Source of the DNA: Oopsacas minuta
Taxonomy: Eukaryota > Animalia > Porifera
Assembly (NCBI GenBank): GCA_024704765.1
Contig: JAKMXF010000015.1
Span: 34,529-98,528 of the forward strand
DNA: 64,000 nt
Reading direction: 5' to 3'
Of this stretch, positions 3,001-42,518 are shown piece by piece (position 1 is the first letter of the stretch; each line of letters begins with the position of its first letter). Both the position numbers and the translations under genes were made by a program. Under the pieces are notes generated by a model. That model saw only the letters and a list, made by a program, of their open reading frames with translations. It was not told the DNA's origin and did no database searches.

Positions 3001-3976
3001 CTGCAATGGTGTAACAAAGTATCTATCAAATTTCATTATTTTAACAATGAAATATATGCATATGATATTTTTCGATTTATCCGCATGAATCCGTCAGTTG
3101 CCAATTGTTTTGCTTTCAACTTACATGCTTCATCTGTTAGCACGGTTATATTCTCAGTGAAAGGACTTACTCCCTATTCCATTGACAGCAGCAACCTGAA
3201 TAAGATACAAATCGTATTCTTCCAGATTCTGTAGATAAACTATTGTAGTATATATCAGAGGATATTCTACAGGATATACTTCTATTAGGCTATATTGAGT
3301 TTCTCTTTGGGATCGTACTGCTTGATAGGTTACATTGAAAACAAGATTGGACCGTTTTGATCTATTAGTGATGGTTCGTCAAATTCTAACATAATTGTAG
3401 TTGAGTTTATAGCTAATCCTGTGAAATTTTGTGGTGCTGATGTAGGAGCTAAATGAGTAGGAATATTATTATACCTCCTACTATCAAATTGAATTAGTGT
3501 GATTTTGGTAAATGTCCACATAGTGAAGTAAATGCACAAATGGAACAGTACACACATTTTATCAACTAGTCGATAAAAATCCTTCTACTCATCCCAATAT
3601 CGCTTCAAAATACACCAACCAGCAACCACCTGGGAGGATCTGGACATCTCTAGATTTGGAGGCGGAAACTGCATTTATGGGAAATTTACATAGAGGTTAT
3701 GTAACAGCAATTTCTCATGGTGGACCCACCCGCCAGGTTTGAATTAGTTTCCTAAAACTTGGCGCAAATTACCTCAATGATCTGTTTGGTTGGAGAGGAT
3801 TATATCTGTGTGCCAATATACCTCATATATTAATCTCTGATATATTGCAACCAGAAATTTATAGTATAACAATTGACAAATTCTTGTAATTTTGAGGTTA
3901 ACAACACTTCAGCTCAATTTATATTAGCTAAATTTAGGTTAGTAGCTGTAATAATAATATAATTATTATACTTATA

Positions 3977-4299
3977 GAGTGGATACCGGTTATAAGAACA
4001 TCGTCGGGAACTGGACATGTTGTTCTTATAACCGGTTTGTAGTATATAGTGAAAACACTTCATTTAAACATATTTGGATGTAGGAACCTACCATATATAG
4101 AAAATGGTTATCATATCTACTGAATAATTTATTCCGATTCTACAAACACACCGTATTATGAACCAATTTTGCTACTACTCTAAGAGTGTTCTTATAACCG
4201 GCATAATTATATTTGGGTATTTGGTAACCGTTTTCAAGTACAATGTTCCTATACCCAGCATGTTCTTATAACCTGTGTTCTTATATCCGACATCTACTG
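3977..4299. mobile_element. Tc1/pogo-type MITE in an FN3 gene intron
   Basis: Imperfect 24-bp inverted ends (gagtggataccggttataagaaca vs reverse complement cagtagatgtcggatataagaaca), TA at the left flank, and several internal tgttcttataacc repeats. Confidence 0.6.
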
Positions 4300-5362
4300 C
4301 ATTATCAATATATTATTCAATATCTTACCTGTTTGCAATGTTCTAATGACAATTTCTGAACTCAGCGGTCCCTCCATACCAGAATTAATTGCTCTTATAG
4401 AGATAGCATAATTGTGTAGTTGTGTCTGAGAAAGCTGTTACATTCCTTGGTGACATGTCTGGTGCTATAGAATGTAGAGATATGCTTATAATTTCATTCT
4501 TATCATAAAATTATTGTAAGTAGACCCCGCTTAATAACGGTGATCTTCCCAAAGTACGAATAATATTATGGTAATAACATATCGACAAGACATAGATTTA
4601 TTCAAATTATACCTTAGATAAGTAATTGGCAGCCCAGAATATGTTTACTTCTGGACCAGGTCATTTTGAATAGATTAAATGAATTCATTCTACTTACCTG
4701 CTGGTAAGGTTTCTTGAGTCAGTTCATTGGTATAAGGGCCAATTCCTTCAGAATTAACTGCAGCTACGCTAAATGTATAATTATTGAATTCTTCAGGTCC
4801 ACTCAGTAGATAAGTAACAGTATCTGTTGCTGGGTAATCCGTTGTAATGTTTGAAACATTAATGAACTCATTCATAGAAGGAAATGGATTTCCTACCACT
4901 TGTATTATATATGAAGTTATAAGTCCATTTTGTGCTTCAGTAAGAGGAGGTAGCCAACCAAGAAGAATCCTGGTTTCCTCGAAAAATTCCACTATTAAAA
5001 TCTGTGGAGGTTGATCAGGAGCTAAATTGAAATAATAAATAATACATGGAAGTTTTAAATAATGATGTACCCTGGTTAATAGGTAGCGATTATTAATTTC
5101 AAACCTCCTAGAGAGGGAAGTTGCGATTATTGTAAACACTACGTTAATTTCTATATAATCATACTTATGTGTTACATTATGTGTATTTATCCAACAAACA
5201 GTAGCTAAATTAAAATACAGGGGAATGACTCATTATAAGCAGTTATTATTAGTAGGAGAAGGCCTTATTCGAGGTAATAGGGTACATAATATAGCTGGTA
5301 TTGATGCCAACCAATCTGTTGTCCTTATAGCACTGACAGGTTTTCGTTATGACTATCCTTTA

Positions 5363-5553
5363 CATACTTTCCAACCTGGGTGAAGGAAAAAGCGAGCAGA
5401 AAGTAGTGATTTAGCAGGACATCGCGGGACATTGCATATTTGCATTAGACTGTACTACAAAAATGCCAGAAAATAAAGATTTTGCCAAGTTTTGGCGGGA
5501 TTTTGGTCAGAAAAGCGGGACGTCCCGCCAAAACCTGACAGTTGGCAAGTATG
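5363..5553. mobile_element. Non-autonomous DNA element with CATAC-TTGCCAAC-type TIRs
   Basis: Left end catactttccaac, right end gttggcaagtatg. The same terminus recurs at 27281, 27641, 27706 and 27875. No clear TSD here. Confidence 0.55.
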
Positions 5554-6718
5554 TTCTAATATCAGGTTAGAGAAGGATGTAACATGGACAACTCGTATAA
5601 CCTCTTGGGACTAGAAAAACAATCGCTGTATTCATTTAGAAGTTAATTTGAGCTTATTGCTTTAGTGAAAATGGTGACTGGATCGTTGTAATATCATACA
5701 CCTCAAGTGACAAGAATTGCAGCAAAAAATTGAGTTACGATATTTTTATATTTCGAATATTTCGTGCTTATTGTGTGAAATATTGATTCTTTCTAGTGAA
5801 GTACTGTAGTAGTGTTTCTAGTAAGTTATGATTAATGTATGACTATATTCTACAGTAAACCTACATACACGATACATGATACAACAAATACATGCAGCAA
5901 CCTGTTGCTTGAAAAAATTTTGGAATTAGAGGGAAATTTGTTGCAGACAGCATTGTTATACCGTGTACATGTATGGTAAGAGTTGCATCAAACAAAGTTG
6001 CATCATGTATGCTGGCCTAAATATACAATAAGTATGATGACAAGTATTGGAGAGTAATGTAGGGGTCTATAACTCTAAGTCATATATCAAACATGTATAC
6101 AAAGCAATAAAAATTTCAACTCACCAGTTGGCTGAGTTTCTATGTACATCGGCTCACTCTCCATTCCTACTCCAATAGAATTTACAGCACTAATAACAAA
6201 TGTGTAATTGTTATACGCTTCTAAGATTACATAATAGATACTGTTTTCTTGGTTTGGACTAGCCATTACCTCTTCTACTGTTAGATTTGTGTCAATTGGA
6301 TTTCCATAATATGTAATATTGTATGAGAGGATGATATCATTACGTTCTATAGCTAGTGGGGGGAACCAGTCTATAGGTATTGTATTATCTGATAGTGTTA
6401 GAATAGTGATGTTGGTTGGAGGTCCACTTGCCACTGAAATACAAGATTTAGATAAAATAAAATTCCTGTTATATCGAACTCATGGGACCGCAATATTTCT
6501 TCAATAAAATTGGAATTCGACATAGACGATGCCCCAAATATTGGAAATGTGGGAGTACTCGTAATTGAAGCTAAAAGAAAATAACGAATGGTGATTGCTA
6601 TGTATATGTTATTTGCATTATAATCACAATCTTTGATTTATGAACGATGCTCAAATTTGCAAAAATACAAATAAAATATTTCCGGATGGGGAACCGATTT
6701 TGGACAGGTGGGTATAAG

Positions 6719-12603: not shown

Positions 12604-14116
12604 ATGAAAAAATCTGACAAACAAGTTGCTAGAACCTTACCAGTCCTGATAGCATGCATTGCATCATCCCTGTCATCATTTGTTTGTGGATTCAGCCTAG
12701 GATATACATCTCCAATTGAGGAGGAGATTAAGAATATTGGAATCCTCGATGATGACACCTTTCCTGTTTTCAGTTCTTCTCTGTTCTTTGCAGCAATAAC
12801 TGGGGCGTTGTTAGGTTCATTAGTTACAGATTTGATAGGGTAAGAAGGCTCTCTTAATATTCTCTTCGGTACCAAACGCAATTGGTTGGTTATTGGTTAC
12901 ATGTGGATACGATTGGGTTGTAATGGTGATAGGTAGAGTTATAATAGGATTATCATTAGGTTTAATTATCCCAATTATCTCTATATATATTGCAGATTTA
13001 GCTCCAAAAGAACACAAGGGATTCTATGGTAGTATTTTTGAACATGCATTCATAATTGGTATTTTAATGAGTCACTTCATTGGGATATTTGTGTCATTCC
13101 GATGGCTTGCACTGGTTCCTGTAGTAGTGTTATTGTTTCAATCCCTGCTTCTCACATGGCAACCTTACTCTCCTTACTGGTTAGTATCCAGGGGGTTAGA
13201 GAAACGAGGCTTTCGTACCGTGAAGTATTTGAGAGGACCGAAGTACGATTTTCTGTCAGAGTTTGAGGAAATGAAGGATGTAGTCAAGGAAAATGCTACA
13301 TGGACATTCATGGATCGTGTTAAAAGTTTAATCTTCAATTTAGCCTATTTGAGGGCTATCATCATCATCTCGCTCATTATGGTCTTCGTGGAACTAACTG
13401 GGATATCAGTTGTAGCTTCATATTCGACGAGTTTATTGGAACATAGTATCTTGATTCATCCTAAAGTTGCGTCTATCCTACCTACAACTATTCAATGCAT
13501 TTCAGTCTTGATATTCACTTTTCTTGTTGATCGGATTGGTAGAAAGCCCCTATTGATAGTATCTGGAGCTGGTATTGCTCTCAGCCATGTGATTCTCTCC
13601 ATCAATTCATTTGGATTACAATTCTTCTGGCCACAGTGCACTCAATTCGAAACAACAACAAATTTCACTCACACTGTTTCTGGCAATCTAGGCGTGAGTG
13701 AAGATTTTTGCAATCATATAACCCTCATTCCATTGCTAGCTCTGGTGATCCTGAGGTTTATGTATGGACTGGGGTGGGGGCCTATACCGTTTGTATTGTT
13801 GGGAGAATCTCTTCCTTCTAAAGTTCGGTCTATATCCGCTTCTGTTGCTATTTGCGTGTTAACATTTTCAAATGCATTAACTCTCCTATTATTCCCATAT
13901 CTTGAGAGGTTAATTGGAGATTATTTTGTATTTTTGCTTTACGTTTTGGTGAATCTTACCTCTTGTGCTTTTATCCTCTTTTTCGTTCCTGAAACAAAAG
14001 GTCTAAATTTGACCCAAATTGAAGAGTTGTTTAAAGGGAAAGTGATTTTTCTTAGATGTAAAGTGCGAAACCCTTTTGTTAGAAGAGATGTATATGTGGT
14101 AAAGACAGATTGTTAA
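12604..14116 (+). pseudogene. Intronless MFS sugar porter (SLC2A8/GLUT8, Tret1-like) with one +1 frameshift
   Basis: Sugar-porter motifs GFSLGYTSP, DRIGRKPLL, GLGWGPIPFVLLGE and VPETKG. ORFs 12604-12843 and 12893-14116 join as DLIG-KKALLIFSSVPNAIGWLLV if one G at 12838-12840 is removed (503 aa). Confidence 0.85.
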
Positions 14117-16301
14117 TTTGTATTATTCTATTACTGTATTCATATGTTTTGTGACATAAATCTGTATTAAAATACTGCAATTGTAATCTTTTTGTTTGTT
14201 CTTTGGCGAGGAATGGTTTCAAGGTATGCTCTATTGAATTAGAATTTCTCAATCCTGAGATGTCGCATAACGTGGTTTTAGGGTTCATCATTCGACCCAT
14301 ATTGTTAGAATACATAGCTTTCTCCTTCTGTGTTCTGAATGCGGTATTGATCCAGCAAGTTTCAATTGGATCGGAGTAGATTTAGTGGTAACGCAATGTA
14401 TTTTGTAAAGTTGTCGGTTTTCATCTTAACTTGGTGAATAATGTAGTGTTTCAGTGATATAGTAGATCTGAAAAATTGGATTTGAGTAGTTTTGGGGTTG
14501 TTTCATGGCAGCCATTAATAGTTTTGATAGCCGATGATATACTGTTTAGAGGATAACTCGCGTCCTTAATTTGGTTAACCAACCACAGCCCTGAATACAA
14601 TAATTGAAATATTGAAATATTCGTAGAAACTCGCTTCGGCTATTCCGGCAATATGATATCTCTTACCAAATTGATGTAATCATGAATACGCCAATTGCCT
14701 ATTTATAGTAATTTTTACTTATTATACTAATATTCTGAACTTTGAATTTATTATGGGTTTCTGTTCAATTTGTCGCATTAATGTTACGATACATTAGACA
14801 TAATATTTTACTTTAAATCAGTTTTCCATAGGTTTGTATGGATTATTTATCAATAAATGTGTCCATAGCTTTAGTACAGTACATGTTGATCCCTTTTACG
14901 ATTTTGCTTTAATCAATTTTGTCCCGAAATATATTTGATAGTAAAAGGAGTAGTCAATAATCTTCTGTGTTAACAGTTCAAAACATAAAATATCACGTTT
15001 GAAACATGTTATAGAGATTTAAATACAAGTTGTAATGTACAATAGTTGGGCAATGATACGTAGTACTTGTTTGGTATTTAATAAGTTTCCTACTTACATT
15101 ACCTCTAAAATTGTTGGAAATTTTCAATAAGTGGTGAAGATTTAAATTTGCTCACAATTTTGTATGTTTGCTCAGCAAGTGTAATGCATAGGATTAGTTA
15201 TATTTTAGATAAAAAGTGTAAACTTGATAAGAAACTAAAACATGTGATCTTACATGTTTTTGGTTAACGAGCAAAAATATTCACTAAGTTGATAATCTAT
15301 TTGAATGATTATGTTTCATTTTATGTTTTGAAATACAAGCCAATTTTTCCAAAAAAATTAATTGAATTAGAAGAGTGTTATAGGAGAATACATTATTGGT
15401 AATGACATTCCAGAAGAGCTTTAAGTTGATATAACAGTAAATGAAAATGCGGTTACGTATTAAGAAAAGGCCCCTTTTGGCAAAAATTACAAGTAAATAT
15501 AAAGTTAAAGGACAAAAGTATTCGACCACTTACCGTATATAATACTAACTATATCAAACTATAATCTAATTACTCTGATGTATAAAATAATTATTAGTTA
15601 TAAAGCAGAGAATAAGCATAGACAAGATAGATTCATTTATGTAGATTGACGGATATCGATATTTTAAGAATATCTTAGTTACATTGGCGAATAAGAATAT
15701 AACAAAATATTAGCAATTCTGAAATGGTCGAATACTTTTGTCCTTTAATAATATATTTATAGCGTAAATATAAAATTATATATTCTTGAGTGGCTGATAC
15801 ATCTTCTATGTAGATATTAGAAAAAGTATCTTTGGATTTGATTTCTAATTTTACATTCGTCATCAGTCTTGAGATTTAAATGAGTTAAATTACCAATGAA
15901 AAACCTTTACCTTTGCATAATTGTTAATTTGTTTATTAAATATTTTACTCACTGAATTATGATCTAATAAACATCCAATATCATATCGTTTACTATTGTA
16001 TAGGTGGTTAGTATATCTTGGTTTAATTAATTACCTTCTTTGTGATATGTATCTTGAATTGGAGTGATAGGCCCTGAACTAATCTCGATACCACCAATGA
16101 TGAGGAAAAGGGAGACAATACAAGCAAGAAACTAAACAGTAAGGATGTAGCCGAAGAAGCGAAGAACGAATCAGAAGAAGAACAGGAATTATTTGGTTTA
16201 CTGAAAGAGTGCAATCCAATGCGAGCACGCCATAAATCAATAGAAATCATGTATATAAATAAGAGTAGAAATTGAAGTTGATAAAAACGTCTCTTTACCA
16301 T

Positions 16302-30768: not shown

Positions 30769-33700
30769 ATGGAGATAGATAATGTTAATATAAAATCAAT
30801 TCCAGAGCAAGATACATCAGATGATACACCTTTCTTACCAATAAAATCCCATTCAAATCAGAATATTACCACATATAACACAATACATAGAAGTATTATA
30901 GTTAATATCTTAACTAAGATTAATTTTAATATCTATATATGGACAGCTGCTGTACTTGCTATTGCAGGTGGTATTCTGTTTGGATATGATTTGGGAATTA
31001 TTTCAGGAGCCATTTTACAACTGAGAAATGAATTCTGCTTTGGGATTGTTAAAAGTGAGGTGAGTTATTAATTATAAAAAGTAAGCTACGCTTCCTTGCG
31101 CAACGCCAAATTACAAAGAATGACAGCTGTACAATCAAACCTAAGTTGATTGGATAACAGACAAATGAATTTCATTACTATTTGCTTGCGCACTGATAAT
31201 CTGTATGCTGACTACCCTCGAATTTTACATAAACAACAACAAATATTAATCATATGATGCTAACAATATCATATTCGGACTCAGCAAACTCGATTACCCC
31301 TTTATAACCTTTAGAAGTATTCTAAGACCTTTTTGATTTTTTCGTATTATTTCCCCTATGTATATTCATAAATCAAACAAATATGAACTTTGTGAGGTGT
31401 TAATATTTTCATTAGATATTTAAAATGTTTCTAGAAACGTCATTTCCATCCCTCGTACCATCTCTTACCAGTTCCTCAATCAATTCGGACAAACAAATAA
31501 ATCATTGAGTTTTTGATATATAAAATACACTATCATCGTTATTCTGCACAAGTTTCAGTATTCTTGCTATAAAAGTGAATGCTGGGACATTTCATAATTC
31601 ACATTCACATAATCATTTCTTTAAATGGTTTGACGTTGTACATATAGCAATTTCCCGATGTACAATGGTTAAATTCAATTTTATTTATTTGAATACAAAT
31701 CAAATCAAAATCTGAAATAATGAAAAGGAGCGCGATTAGCGCTCCAATTATTCAGAAGCGGCAGCGGGAGTGCGCTTCTTTTGTGTATGGAGACGAGGTT
31801 GGAGCACCGCTCAATTTAAAGGCCAGGAGTGAGAGCGCGCCCCAAAGAATGAGTAGCCCCTAATGCACTGCCTATAGGATACTATTCTTAATGAGAATGG
31901 AGTTATATAACTCCATACTCCTGCATTTATTTTCATATAAATACTGAATAATTTGATTGTTAATTTCTTTAGATCGTAGTGAGTTCACTAGTAGCTGGAG
32001 CTATTATCGGATCTCTGACTGGTGGTATTCTCGTGGATTTCCTCGGCAGAAAAGTTTCCATTATATTAGACTCAGTGGTGTTCTGTGTAGGCGCTGTAAT
32101 ACTAATTTTCTCAGAGAGTTTCTGGTTGCTAGTTATAGGCAGGTTGATAATAGGCTATGGAGTATCTCTATCTGCAACAGCAGAATGTGTCTATGTGAGT
32201 GAAATTGCTCCTTCAAAGAAGAGAGGAATGCTAGTCTCTCTGAATGAGCTAGGAATATGTTTAGGAGTTCTACTAGCTTATACTGTAAGCTATTTATTCG
32301 TAGGTGAGTTATGTAATTATAGAATAATACGTTCTGTCCGTTTGATAAATTACTTTTGGAATAAGACAATGCACAGCAACGAATCTACAATTGTAGCTTC
32401 GGTACTTTTTGAATTTTGTTGAATTTAGGATCTAAAATTATCCATGGTCCATTTTATATCACCTTCCAGTCGCATACCAACCACTTCACATATCCAGAAG
32501 GGAGTTTCTGCATGCAATCGTTCTTAAATTTCCCCAAACTATTTCCAACCTCATGTCCCTCCTTGGATTAATTTGGACATAAAATTGTCTGATATCAAAT
32601 GTGGCGAACTATCCAAGCACAATGTAAACAAAATGTGTCGCATTTTCGACACCTTGTCTATTCCACTGATAACGAGCATTTAACTTCTGCAATTCTGACT
32701 ATTACTGTTTGTAGATAAATCAGAAGGATGGAGATACATGTTTGGTTTATGTATCATCCCTGCAGTAATACAAGGTGTAGGTACTCTATTCTTACCCAGA
32801 ACACCACGCTATCTCCTCTTAAGAAGTAGAGTTGAGCTAGCTCGTAGTACGCTACAGAAGATCAGAGGTAAAGATACTGATGTGAGTGGAGAGTTCAAAG
32901 AAATGAGAGCTGCTATACTTGAGGAGGAGAAATACAATTGGTAAGTACTAAATAGCTGTCCAGTACAGTAGAAATTGGATGCAGTGATATTTTAGTTCAT
33001 TCAGAGCTGCCCTCAAGCCCCCGTCACACATCTTATATATTAGTGCAGACACAATTGAATTGGTCTTATACGGTCTGTGACTCTAATTGCTAAATTATTC
33101 GTTCAGATTAGTGAAATGCATTGAAACATTACTGAAGTATCTTGGAGTACGTTTTTCCAAAATTGTATAAACAATAAAAGACTCCAAATGTGTACTATAT
33201 TATGTATTTGTCAGCCGCAGAAATGAATACGATTATCTCTTTTTAGAACATTTTCCAAAGGTTGTACGTATCACCTTTAGCTACTGTTAGGATTGGCGAT
33301 TGTCTACTATATGAGAATATTATACTATATACAGCAGTATATATAGTAATATGAATATACGCTATAGTGTATTTCTTGGTCCAGACAATATTCTTATATG
33401 ATGTATCTACTGCACTTTATATGGTTGGAAAGCTCGCTTGTCAAAAGGTCAGGTGATTTACAGGAGCTAGGTTTTCTTCTCTGATAATCTTACCTTGCTA
33501 ATCCCATCACTTAATTAAATCGTAAATTGAATTGAATCACTTCCATAATACGGTTAACTAGTTTCGAGCATTTTATATCTTCAATGTAATAGGCTCTCGT
33601 CAAAATAAATACTGAGCAAAACTGGCAGTATATCCCTCCCTCCCTTAGTGTATTGATTATCTCAACTCTAAGTTGATTAATTGCGCCTGAAATTCACCTG

Positions 33701-39770: not shown

Positions 39771-40189
39771 ATTTTTTATCTTATATTTCTATCTATTTAT
39801 TCTCTCTATATATATTTAAAGTAGTGTATGTGTGCTGTGTTCAATTAGTTTCAGCTACGAAGTGCCTGTGTAGAGGATAGTTTTAGAGTAGCAGCGGTCC
39901 GCAATTTATATATGTTACCGGTCGGTCCGGTCCAGTTCAGTCCATTCCATTCCTGCTCTATAATTTTATAGCAATCTCCGCACTAGCTAGTTCACAATAA
40001 TTAAATAAGATAATGTAGCAATCCGTCCAAATGCCAAACGAAATTGTAATTCAATACACAGATATAGCATAGCTTCATGCTATATTATTAAATATCAATT
40101 ATTGTGTGTGTATTTGTACACTTTATATTATAATTATAGGGGATGATCTGCGTATATAATATTGGGAAATACATATCCTTCTGTTGACG

Positions 40190-42186
40190 CGTGAACTAAG
40201 TAATATAAAGACTGGAAACAGCAATAAAAAACTGGACCATGGATGAACTACAAGTACATTCGTTTTTTGCTATTTATTATTAGTTATGAACTTTAAACGA
40301 TAAATATGCCTATTTTAATTGGAAATCGACTCTGAAATTGGACCAGGGATGAGATAGAAGTCATTTAAATAAGGTATGTTATTATCATAGCATATCATTG
40401 CTTATAACTGAAATAATAACATAATAATAGGTCTAAAACAACAGGAATATAATAAAGGAATAGGAAACCAAAATCATTACAAAACTGTTAAGTGATTTAG
40501 TAGCAGGAACTAATATGTCTTCTAACTAGATCTAAATTTCTTCAATCATTCTTACTAGATGTGATTTCAGAGTTGACATTGCGAACTTTATTAGCTAGTT
40601 TGCAATTAGTACATACACTAAGGATCTTCCTAAGGATAGTCTAACCAGAAGTACCACAGCCCTTACAACTATCTCTCCAATGCTGGCTAAAATTATCAAC
40701 CAACATATTTTCAGTCAGCTGAATTAATACCCATCTTGATGGCGAGGAATAGAAGTGTTTCCTAAGAGTTTCATTCTCATCAATCTTGATAAATATTTTC
40801 CATAATACAACAATTGATTCAATTACTATTTCTGAAGGCCAATTCAGAGAACTACAATCAATGTCCTTATAAGGTCATATTTAATAGTGTCTGTAATCTC
40901 AATATCTTGGTTCTCAGTTAGGTGCTGACTACAAAGATGGCAAGTGGCAGTTTTAAGATAAGAGTACACAGCGTAACCACCAATAAATACAATTGATTGG
41001 AGAACATGAAGGTCGAGGTCAATAGAATTTAGATCATGTAACAATTCAGCATACTTATCGCAAGATATATTTATGAGAATATTTTCTAGAACAAAACTGG
41101 ATTCAAATAATTCAGGATTAGTGTAGTTTAGAATATCACCAATTAAGATTTCAATTTGTCGTATATCGGTTAATCTACTGAGGCTCAAAGGAACTTGGTG
41201 TTGGCAACGACTGCTGAAACTGTTAAATCTGAATGAATTGATAAGGTAGATAGAATATGTAGAGGCTGATTGGCGAATTCCAGGTGTATGACCTCTAAGG
41301 TATTACTAGAGGAGTACCATATCGCCCAATCTTGGTTAAGGTGTAACTTTGGCAACTTAATTTTAAGATCCTCAAAATTCCCCAAACCGAACCGTAATGA
41401 ATCTTGTTGATCTTGTATAATGCTATCATGAAGAGCTTTAGCAAAGTTTTCCTCTTCCTTAGATTCAAGATTTAACGCTTTGCTATTTGACCAGTTGTAT
41501 TCAAATATGATGGGCCTGCTTGGAAAATAACAGGCACTGCGTTCGGACGATAAATTGGTCTAATGCGTGGTATTTCGGAGTAGCTACCATCAGCTTGGAG
41601 TGCCCGGTCAACGCGGATAAGATCTTCCTCCCTAAAATGGTGTATGCAAATGATTATTTATCCTCTGGAAGGTCTTCGGTTAGATCCCTATGAAGAGCTC
41701 TAATCCATTTCTCTTTCAAATATTTAGATCCTTTCGGTAAACTGAAAACAGTGCCAGTGGGGTGACCTCTGTAATTAGTTTTGCACCCAAATACAGAACA
41801 TGTATTAGGCATTAAGAAGTGTCTAAAATACATGTGAGAAAAGGTAAAACGAAGGAGGAAATGTATAAAGACGAAAAATCGGGGAATTCCAATCACGGGA
41901 AAAGTTCCCGGTAAAATACAGAATAGAATATTTCAAACAGTACCTGTATTCATTGAATAAAATAAATTAATGATATAATCCAATTATGGTTTATTAATAA
42001 TATTTTATTTAAATGACTTCTATCTCATCACTGGTCCAATTTCAGAGTCGATTTCCAATTAAAATAGGTACATTTATCGTTTAAAGTTCATAACTAATAA
42101 TAAATAGCAAAAACGAATGCACTTGTAGTTCATCCATGGTCCAGTTTTTCATTGCTGTTTCCAGTCCTTATATTACGTAGTTCACG
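40190..42186 (-). mobile_element. P-superfamily (Galileo-like) THAP transposon, internally deleted, 1997 bp
   Basis: About 183-bp TIRs (40190-40372 vs ~42005-42186), exact 7-bp TSD GTTGACG (40183-40189 and 42187-42193), enclosing THAP and P-transposase C-terminal coding relics. Confidence 0.85.
40497..41812 (-). pseudogene. THAP-domain P-type transposase relic lacking the catalytic core
   Basis: MPNTCSVFGC...FSLP...KW...CIHHF...AVPVIF (THAP, split by a frameshift near 41655), then IVFIGGYAVYSYLK..CHLC..YDLIRTL..LNWPSE (THAP9/P C-terminal pattern); several stops and frameshifts. Confidence 0.8.
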
Positions 42187-42330
42187 GTTGACGATATAGG
42201 AAAAGTAAATATTACATTGGAGTAATCGAGTATACTAATTTCGATTTTCACACTTTAAAATTAATCATATGTAATATATTATTGTTTTTATGAATACAAA
42301 AAAAACAAATAGTTGAAATTTCGAAATATA

Positions 42331-42518
42331 CTTAAAGACTTTACCTCAACAGACGTATAGGAGGGGTAATCAAGTAGGCTGAATCAGAATTTCGCATTTT
42401 CAAGTTTCTCATATGTAAATTTATTATTTTTATGAATACAGAGGGAACTTGAATATGCGAAATTCGGATTCAGCCTACTTGATTACTCCAATATTTCTGT
42501 TGAGAGCAAGTCTCTAAG
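42331..42518. mobile_element. Foldback/MITE-like element with ~75-bp imperfect arms
   Basis: 41-bp inner arms (42366-42406 and 42446-42486) differ at 2 sites; outer arms are also complementary; terminal motif cttagagacttgctct recurs near 2978. Confidence 0.7.

Follow-up and report, generated by a model that had tools for sequence, protein, structure and literature searches.

Evidence for a non-autonomous, internally deleted P-superfamily transposon with 7-bp target site duplications in Oopsacas minuta, a glass sponge

Galileo, an insect DNA transposon belonging to the P superfamily, has terminal inverted repeats (TIRs) of several hundred bp or longer. In flies, P elements give target site duplications (TSDs) of 8 bp and both 1360 and Galileo give TSDs of 7 bp; each of the three falls in a clade of its own, and introns are absent from Galileo and 1360 (PMC3698922). 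The TSD of Galileo is 7 bp and occasionally 8 bp, and its TIRs vary greatly in length and may hold tandem repeats (PMC4168063). A THAP site lies about 70 bp inside the Galileo ends, with secondary sites in addition (PMC3688188), and the element is known from Drosophilidae only (PMC10990002). KP in flies is a working THAP repressor protein of 207 aa (PMC7776569). Surveys of glass-sponge repeats go no further than stating that 'DNA transposons dominate' (PMC10280926, PMC12749355). Here we describe an element in a 64-kb stretch of DNA from the glass sponge Oopsacas minuta (the window, G+C content 34.7%), which an earlier reading of the sequence only had called a Galileo-like element with a deleted catalytic core. 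Our analysis indicates that window 40190-42186 is very probably a copy of a cut-and-paste DNA transposon from the P superfamily, which is non-autonomous, has suffered an internal deletion and is now in decay. Coordinates given without a locus or contig name are positions in the window, and the genome searched consisted of 365 contigs (61.46 Mb).

The element is 1,997 bp long and has the termini CGTGAAC...GTTCACG. A repeat search returned two inverted-repeat arms, 40190-40267 with 42109-42186 (78 nt, 95%) and 40264-40377 with 42000-42113 (114 nt, 96%). By direct alignment both arms were found to be a single TIR interrupted by one 1-nt indel, with 40190-40377 and 42000-42186 being approximately 96% identical and the similarity stopping at about nt 190. 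The long TIRs starting with CGTGAAC and the exact TSD GTTGACG described in the sequence-only reading were recovered by the repeat search, the alignment and the empty sites presented below, whereas its TIR length of ~183 bp has to be corrected to 184-188 bp. The ends and the interrupted flanks are listed here.

40080..40189, no strand: left half of the ~360-bp host repeat hit by the insertion; ~40 genome matches at 74-86% identity
40183..40189, no strand: left TSD copy GTTGACG, exact; corresponds to the 7-nt overlap at empty-site paralogs
40190..40377, plus strand: left TIR, 188 nt; terminus CGTGAACTAAGTAATATAAAGACTGG, conserved in related sponge P families
42000..42186, minus strand: right TIR, 187 nt; motif copies at 42130-42143 and 42025-42038
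42187..42193, no strand: right TSD copy GTTGACG, exact 7 bp
42187..42438, no strand: right half of the interrupted host repeat; 1,167 first-look candidate places, with many matches running from query position 1 to ~252

In the genome search, at least ten uninterrupted copies of the host repeat were found in which the left-flank and right-flank matches overlap by exactly 7 nt, for example at C222:1362520-1362526, C111:1076474-1076480, C310:250272-250278 and C302:592500-592506. As the flank matches abut with exactly this overlap, these copies are empty sites in which the seven bases are present once. The empty-site paralogs thus establish both the insertion event and the 7-bp length of the TSD. 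The host repeat itself (40080-40189 and 42187-42438; also 42363-42489) is abundant, has internal 44-nt inverted repeats and probably represents a MITE family (miniature inverted-repeat transposable elements).

Between the TIRs lie the remains of a transposase gene on the minus strand, interrupted by a deletion junction.

41475..41812, minus strand: THAP DNA-binding domain, with the ATG at 41812; in two frames due to a 1-nt deletion between 41657 and 41658
41079..41474, minus strand: what is left of the stretch connecting THAP to the catalytic core, approximately aa 100-246 of the full protein
41077..41079, no strand: deletion junction; ~1,680 bp absent, with 1-2 nt of microhomology or uncertainty
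40525..41077, minus strand: decayed C-terminal region of the transposase (approximately its final 190 codons), broken by several stops and frameshifts

The two THAP halves on the minus strand matched positions 1-43 (window:41657-41812, E 2e-4) and 53-87 (window:41475-41657, E 0.012) of the Pfam THAP model, in agreement with the THAP N-terminus proposed earlier. Downstream of THAP the reading frames of the window copy are broken several times, and the intact counterpart of its C-terminal region is a 191-aa frame in another copy (L028:837-1409, minus strand). Compared with two longer copies, L030 and L037, the 1,680 bp absent from the window copy fall between element positions 887 and 890-893. 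In an alignment with the 950-aa transposase of a second sponge family (family 2, described below), the window copy spanned only aa 1-241 and 721-932. According to this alignment, the lost part (about aa 242-720 of the family 2 protein) comprises RNaseH_N (336-459), the GTP-binding insertion (517-609) and the motifs aligned with the catalytic residues of P transposase. The deletion is in frame at the junction, which is spanned by a 152-codon open frame (window:40847-41302, minus strand). The absence of the RNase H/GTP-binding core had been noticed correctly from the sequence alone, but the fusion point placed at ~41100 was about 20 bp away from the junction at 41077-41079.

The TIR query gave 27 matching places in the genome. 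Further two-ended copies have exact and distinct 7-bp TSDs, namely CCTTACT on contig C177, GCCGTAC on C104, CTAAATT on C325 and GATACGG on C111. An exact 7-bp TSD was thus found in five paired copies including the window copy, or in six of six when an apparently intact relative at locus L056 (below) is counted, and with the termini CGTGAAC/GTTCACG no copy allows an 8-bp reading. The TSD length deduced from the window copy therefore held in the other TSD-bearing paired copies (7 bp, not 8 bp), and searching the genome with the TIR also retrieved the full-length copies of 3.7 kb that had been anticipated. The longer copies are L030 (C104:3878-7586, 3,709 bp) and L037 (on C331, with one side cut off), which span aa 9-948 of the family 2 protein, frameshifts included.

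One deletion junction is common to seven copies: those on C15, C325, C317 and C308, two on C111, and a fragment on C58. As the same deletion is present at different loci with different TSDs, the element moved by transposition after the deletion, with the transposase supplied in trans. The 1-nt deletion in THAP at 41657/41658 was seen in six of the six scorable deletion copies, that is, those still holding the THAP region, and was absent from the long copies (C104, C177) and from L056. The frameshift is older than the amplification, and because it is shared, the founder of the 2-kb subfamily was already incapable of making a THAP protein. Several further stops are now present in each deletion copy. 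The copies diverge by 2.3-7.4% in pairwise comparisons, and the two TIRs within a single copy differ by 2-12%. No intact gene was found among the copies of the window family in this assembly, in which the family is extinct or dormant.

Several copies have a more complex structure. A 5.07-kb copy on C177 was considered as the full-length form and rejected, since it is a deleted copy with a nested hAT-like insertion. This insertion of ~2.4 kb (L028:1706-4087, G000:C177) lies on the opposite strand and looks like a hAT/Buster-like element: its 466-aa frame matches DUF4371 weakly, and a Spin-doc-type zinc finger (PF18658, E 6e-7) is located upstream. On C199 a divergent copy (~83% identical; L029:4139-5280, G000:C199) is split by a mariner-like element, whose frames are 133 and 169 aa long. 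On C331, an intact 410-aa frame on the minus strand (L037:3899-5131, G000:C331) is located where the element copy is cut off. Complementary halves of one element, G000:C156:179-2582 and 13962-15100 (L011, L035), lie in swapped order ~11.4 kb apart on a contig of 22.9 kb, with ATCCACC after the right end and ATTCACC before the left end; possible explanations are a rearrangement, a tandem duplication and an artefact of the assembly.

A word search led to protein P0034, which is 73% identical to translated L037; its gene lies in ENA assembly ERZ25069837, on a contig of 938 kb (locus L056). The element there (L056:3159-6906) is 3,748 bp long and has 142-nt TIRs that are 100% identical and the TSD GGTATGT. 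Its terminal 26 nt are the same as those of the window family, and it shows 74% nucleotide identity to L030 along the full length. In comparison with the intronless family 2 protein its gene consists of three exons (3566-4486, 4548-4782 and 4858-6587) with approximately 962 codons. The introns of 61 and 75 nt have GT..AG borders, and their removal restores the frame relative to the intronless 950-aa relative. The DNA flanking L056 matches the genome of the window solely via other repeats, at 74-92% identity, and L056 therefore originates from a different but related organism. The perfect TIRs and the 7-bp TSD suggest that this insertion is very recent, and L056 is apparently an intact three-exon relative of the window family. 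Beside it, at L056:7402-8012, there is a perfect 250-nt inverted repeat with a 111-nt spacer, resembling a foldback structure.

The protein domains place the family in the P superfamily. In L056, which was searched exon by exon, exon 1 matched THAP positions 1-87 (E 2.3e-12), exon 3 matched PF21787 (RNaseH_N) and PF21788 (GTP-binding) above the Pfam cut-offs, and exon 3 also matched the structure of the Drosophila P transposase, 6P5A, over both domains (E 8.7e-9). On the stop-free piece of L037, PF21788 scored just below its cut-off (E 2.2e-4, 22.1 bits versus 24.8). The L056 motifs FDFVHIIK and PIEHQFG, candidates for carrying the catalytic acidic residues (D, D, E), align at motif level with SDTPHLIK and IVEHFFG of the P transposase; the first motif, MDEIHV, is located in exon 2 of L056 and was aligned to 6P5A for family 2 only. 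The sponge elements share with the superfamily an N-terminal THAP, an RNase H fold with a GTP-binding insertion, and a TIR-bounded structure with a 7- or 8-bp TSD. The assignment to the P superfamily made in the sequence-only reading is upheld by THAP, by the GTP-binding insertion that interrupts the RNase H fold, and by the 6P5A match.

PF21787, the N-terminal domain of the P-type RNase H, has at least 92 matches in the genome, and several of these fall inside long open frames. One such frame, L047:28-2877 on the minus strand, encodes the 950-aa family 2 protein with THAP, RNaseH_N and the GTP-binding insertion, and it matched 6P5A with E 5.8e-10. Family 2 elements are ~3.6 kb long with 130-nt TIRs (L051:2218-2347 and its partner). 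Paired copies of this length number at least 18, and their TIRs share 95-100% identity with the query TIR. Family 2 also has an intact open reading frame (ORF), and on this pattern it looks recently or currently active in O. minuta. The copy at L051:2218-5843 (G000:C310:922717-926340) has both ends, with TIRs 99-100% identical. Its flanks, the only ones of family 2 analysed at both ends, read GTCTCTAT/ATCTCTAT and resemble a TSD of 8 bp in which one base is mismatched. A third P family, represented by L053:1192-5137 (G000:C325), contains a frame of 807 aa and is bounded by TIRs that are at least 71 nt long and 99% identical, with the termini CATAGCA...TGCTATG and the 7-bp TSD ATCCATT. It lies ~3 kb from another copy of the window family on C325.

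The proteins obtained by word search were all sponge-like, chelicerate or unnamed. A quick maximum-likelihood tree was made of 35 proteins, using the part homologous to L056 exon 3 and full-length relatives, with X at the breaks of broken sponge copies and rows below 800 aa excluded; its sampling comprised proteins other than those of Galileo, 1360, P and THAP9. The window family (A), families 2 and 3 and unnamed relatives formed one clade with 100% support in the Shimodaira-Hasegawa-like approximate likelihood ratio test (SH-aLRT), on a long stem and separate from P-like proteins of tick and spider. The latter are the closest named non-sponge relatives and are 28-31% identical to L056 exon 3. 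NCBI and UniProt already name proteins as 'Transposable element P transposase [Oopsacas minuta]', and these are 42-49% identical to L056 exon 3. A search of the available literature gave no paper describing the ends or TSDs of the O. minuta P-type transposases. The earlier suggestion of a non-bilaterian host is thus correct in that the host is a glass sponge, but at database level the host range is not novel, given these names.

The TIRs also contain candidate recognition sites for the transposase.

40233..40246, plus strand: motif TGGACCATGGATGA, starting point for a candidate site of transposase (THAP) binding, at a distance of 44 nt from the end
40339..40352, plus strand: degenerate second occurrence of the motif, inside a direct repeat of 27 nt (40229-40255 / 40335-40361)

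The motif occurs at the same distance from the end in L056 and in family 2. The TIR of family 2 aligns with that of the window family in two blocks only, the terminal ~22 nt (CGTGAcCTACGTtATAATAAGG) and TGGACCATGGATG at 44 nt from the end, and both blocks are kept in L056. Within the window element the motif is found four times, two per TIR, and the second copy lies 106 nt further in, within the 27-nt direct repeat; approximately 0.55 chance matches are expected over 64 kb. Another match at 32438-32451 was considered as an element end and rejected. The conservation of the two TIR blocks suggests that they are putative contacts of the transposase.

Taken together, the full-length form is ~3.7 kb long and has TIRs of 142-188 bp and a three-exon gene of ~962 codons. 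The predicted product begins with THAP, followed by a linker, by the RNase H fold that the GTP-binding insertion interrupts, and by the C-terminal domain. An internal deletion of ~1.7 kb, which probably arose by interrupted gap repair after excision, removed the whole catalytic core including the putative DDE residues, together with both introns. The deleted form, already carrying the 1-nt frameshift in THAP, then reached at least seven places through mobilisation in trans. Recognition by the transposase presumably involves the terminal ~26 nt, which are conserved, and the TGGACCATGGATGA motif 44 nt inside each end, and the target would be cut with a 7-nt stagger; which transposase moved the deleted form is something we infer.

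Some observations weigh against this account. The 2-kb copy on C317 (L034, G000:C317:334495-336509) has no matching TSD (TCACCGC versus ATCCATC). Pfam gave no match in the post-THAP and C-terminal pieces of the window copy, and its C-terminal pieces were assigned via alignment to the longer copies; Pfam gave no match in the intact 191-aa C-terminal piece of L028 either. No intact transposase of this family was found in the assembly, so that mobilisation in trans is deduced from the pattern of copies, and the proposed binding sites are deduced from conservation between diverged TIRs. As to the C317 copy itself, its mismatched TSD could mark an exchange between copies. Its flanks were also compared, as possible paralogs, with the flanks of the C156 ends, and there was no similarity beyond ~12 nt.

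The mobilising transposase could also have come from family 2 in the same genome, whose intact 950-aa ORF is bounded by 130-bp TIRs. The two families share the terminal ~22 nt and TGGACCATGGATG at the same distance from the end, and the intact ORF and at least 18 paired copies of family 2 would fit with such cross-mobilisation of the 2-kb elements. However, the 2-kb copies differ by at least 2.3% and look older than the family 2 burst, the THAP identity between the families is only ~50%, and the sole two-ended family 2 copy appears to have an 8-bp TSD (with one mismatch) and not a 7-bp one. We consider cross-mobilisation by family 2 unlikely.

It was further considered whether the window family truly belongs to the Galileo lineage of Drosophilidae or is its sister, with the long TIRs and the 7-bp TSD due to descent and not convergence. 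The TSD was 7 bp in all TSD-scored paired copies and in L056, and the TIRs, at 142-188 bp, are longer than those of P and 1360, which measure 31 bp (PMC7776569; PMC3698922). The putative motif ~44 nt inside the end, which recurs deeper, also recalls the THAP sites of Galileo (PMC3688188). The 7-bp TSD had been taken together with the long TIRs as a hallmark of Galileo in the sequence-only reading, but this TSD is not diagnostic, as it is also made by 1360 (PMC3698922) and by the L053 family. In addition, the L056 gene contains two introns, unlike those of Galileo and 1360, which lack introns (PMC3698922; PMC10990002), and tandem repeats were not found in the TIR, which has one 27-nt direct repeat with a spacing of 106 nt in a total of 142-188 nt. 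Of the traits of Galileo, the sponge family thus has the 7-bp TSD, and it has neither Foldback-like repetitive TIRs nor an intronless gene. The tree of available proteins gives strong support to a separate clade of the sponge families, which sits on a long stem, and the closest named non-sponge relatives, from tick and spider, are only 28-31% identical. Such kinship with the Galileo lineage is therefore improbable in our estimate, and 'Galileo-like' is fair as a description of two traits. The chance appears similarly small that the hexactinellid P clade (the window family, families 2 and 3 and relatives) is the closest relative of the insect Galileo and 1360 lineage. If this were true, the 7-bp stagger and extended TIRs with repeated THAP sites would belong to an ancient branch of the P superfamily predating Bilateria, instead of being an oddity of Drosophila, and at least one member of that branch would still be mobile in glass sponges.

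That the deleted element is a KP-type derivative, whose truncated THAP-bearing protein represses transposition by competing for the ends, is very improbable: the junction is in frame and covered by a 152-codon frame, a majority consensus of six deletion copies (built solely for counting open frames) is open apart from the THAP break, with a frame of 372 codons that runs from this break over the junction up to the normal stop, and the deleted form outnumbers the other forms, as KP does in flies (PMC7776569), but the 1-nt THAP deletion is present in 6/6 scorable copies and absent from the long copies and L056, the founder protein ended after ~52 codons, ahead of the C-X2-H half of the zinc site, and each copy now has several further stops. 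With the THAP frame broken in the founder, the parallel to KP that had been drawn earlier is structural only; the in-frame internal deletion stands, and a THAP-encoding derivative does not.

The preferred account, a P-superfamily deletion derivative moved in trans, adds a well-delimited P family from a glass sponge, for which the ends, the TSD, a full-length form, a deletion derivative and empty sites are defined. The window element is a fairly ordinary new P family in a host with such transposases already annotated, and the window copy itself is expected to have no function. As a 7-bp TSD and TIRs of 70-190 bp are present in P elements of a host very distant from flies, the view that these traits are specific to Galileo is weakened, and the sequences are offered for rooting the split between P, Galileo and 1360. 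The more useful lead is given by the apparently intact and recently inserted P-type elements, family 2 and L056, which may be of use as mobile-element tools in sponges.

With regard to known systems, the annotated P transposases of O. minuta and the P-like proteins of chelicerates belong to the same superfamily as the window family. These entries differ in being gene predictions with no ends or TSDs described, and none of them is the cognate transposase of the window family.

The termini of Drosophila P and of the window family appear alike in beginning with C-R-T-G-A and in having ATAAGG ~15-22 nt in. The sponge family is also similar to P in the order of the domains (THAP, linker, RNase H with the GTP-binding insertion, C-terminal domain), in the presence of introns, and in that deleted non-autonomous copies are more numerous than full-length ones. 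P differs in having 31-bp TIRs and an 8-bp TSD (PMC7776569), as compared to 188-nt TIRs and a 7-bp TSD in the sponge, so that this canonical combination is absent from the window element. The KP derivative differs as a working THAP repressor, since the THAP frame is broken in the scorable deletion copies of the sponge. The partnership between BuT5 and P of the repleta group is a further parallel, in which a short defective or non-coding partner is moved by a P-family transposase via shared ends. However, BuT5 is ~1 kb long with 3-bp TIRs and 8-9-bp TSDs (PMC3698922), whereas the sponge partner is a simple 2-kb deletion derivative with full-length TIRs.

1360 (also Hoppel or ProtoP) is alike in its 7-bp TSD and P-type transposase, and differs as an insect element with short TIRs and no introns (PMC3698922). 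Galileo has in common with the sponge family a THAP-bearing P-type transposase, a 7-bp TSD, TIRs far longer than those of P, and a majority of defective copies. Its TIRs often contain tandem repeats (PMC4168063), in contrast to the 142-188 bp with one dispersed 27-nt repeat in the sponge, and its gene lacks introns whereas the sponge gene has two. The candidate motif 44 nt inside the sponge ends, with its deeper copy, parallels the THAP site of Galileo ~70 bp inside the ends and its secondary sites.

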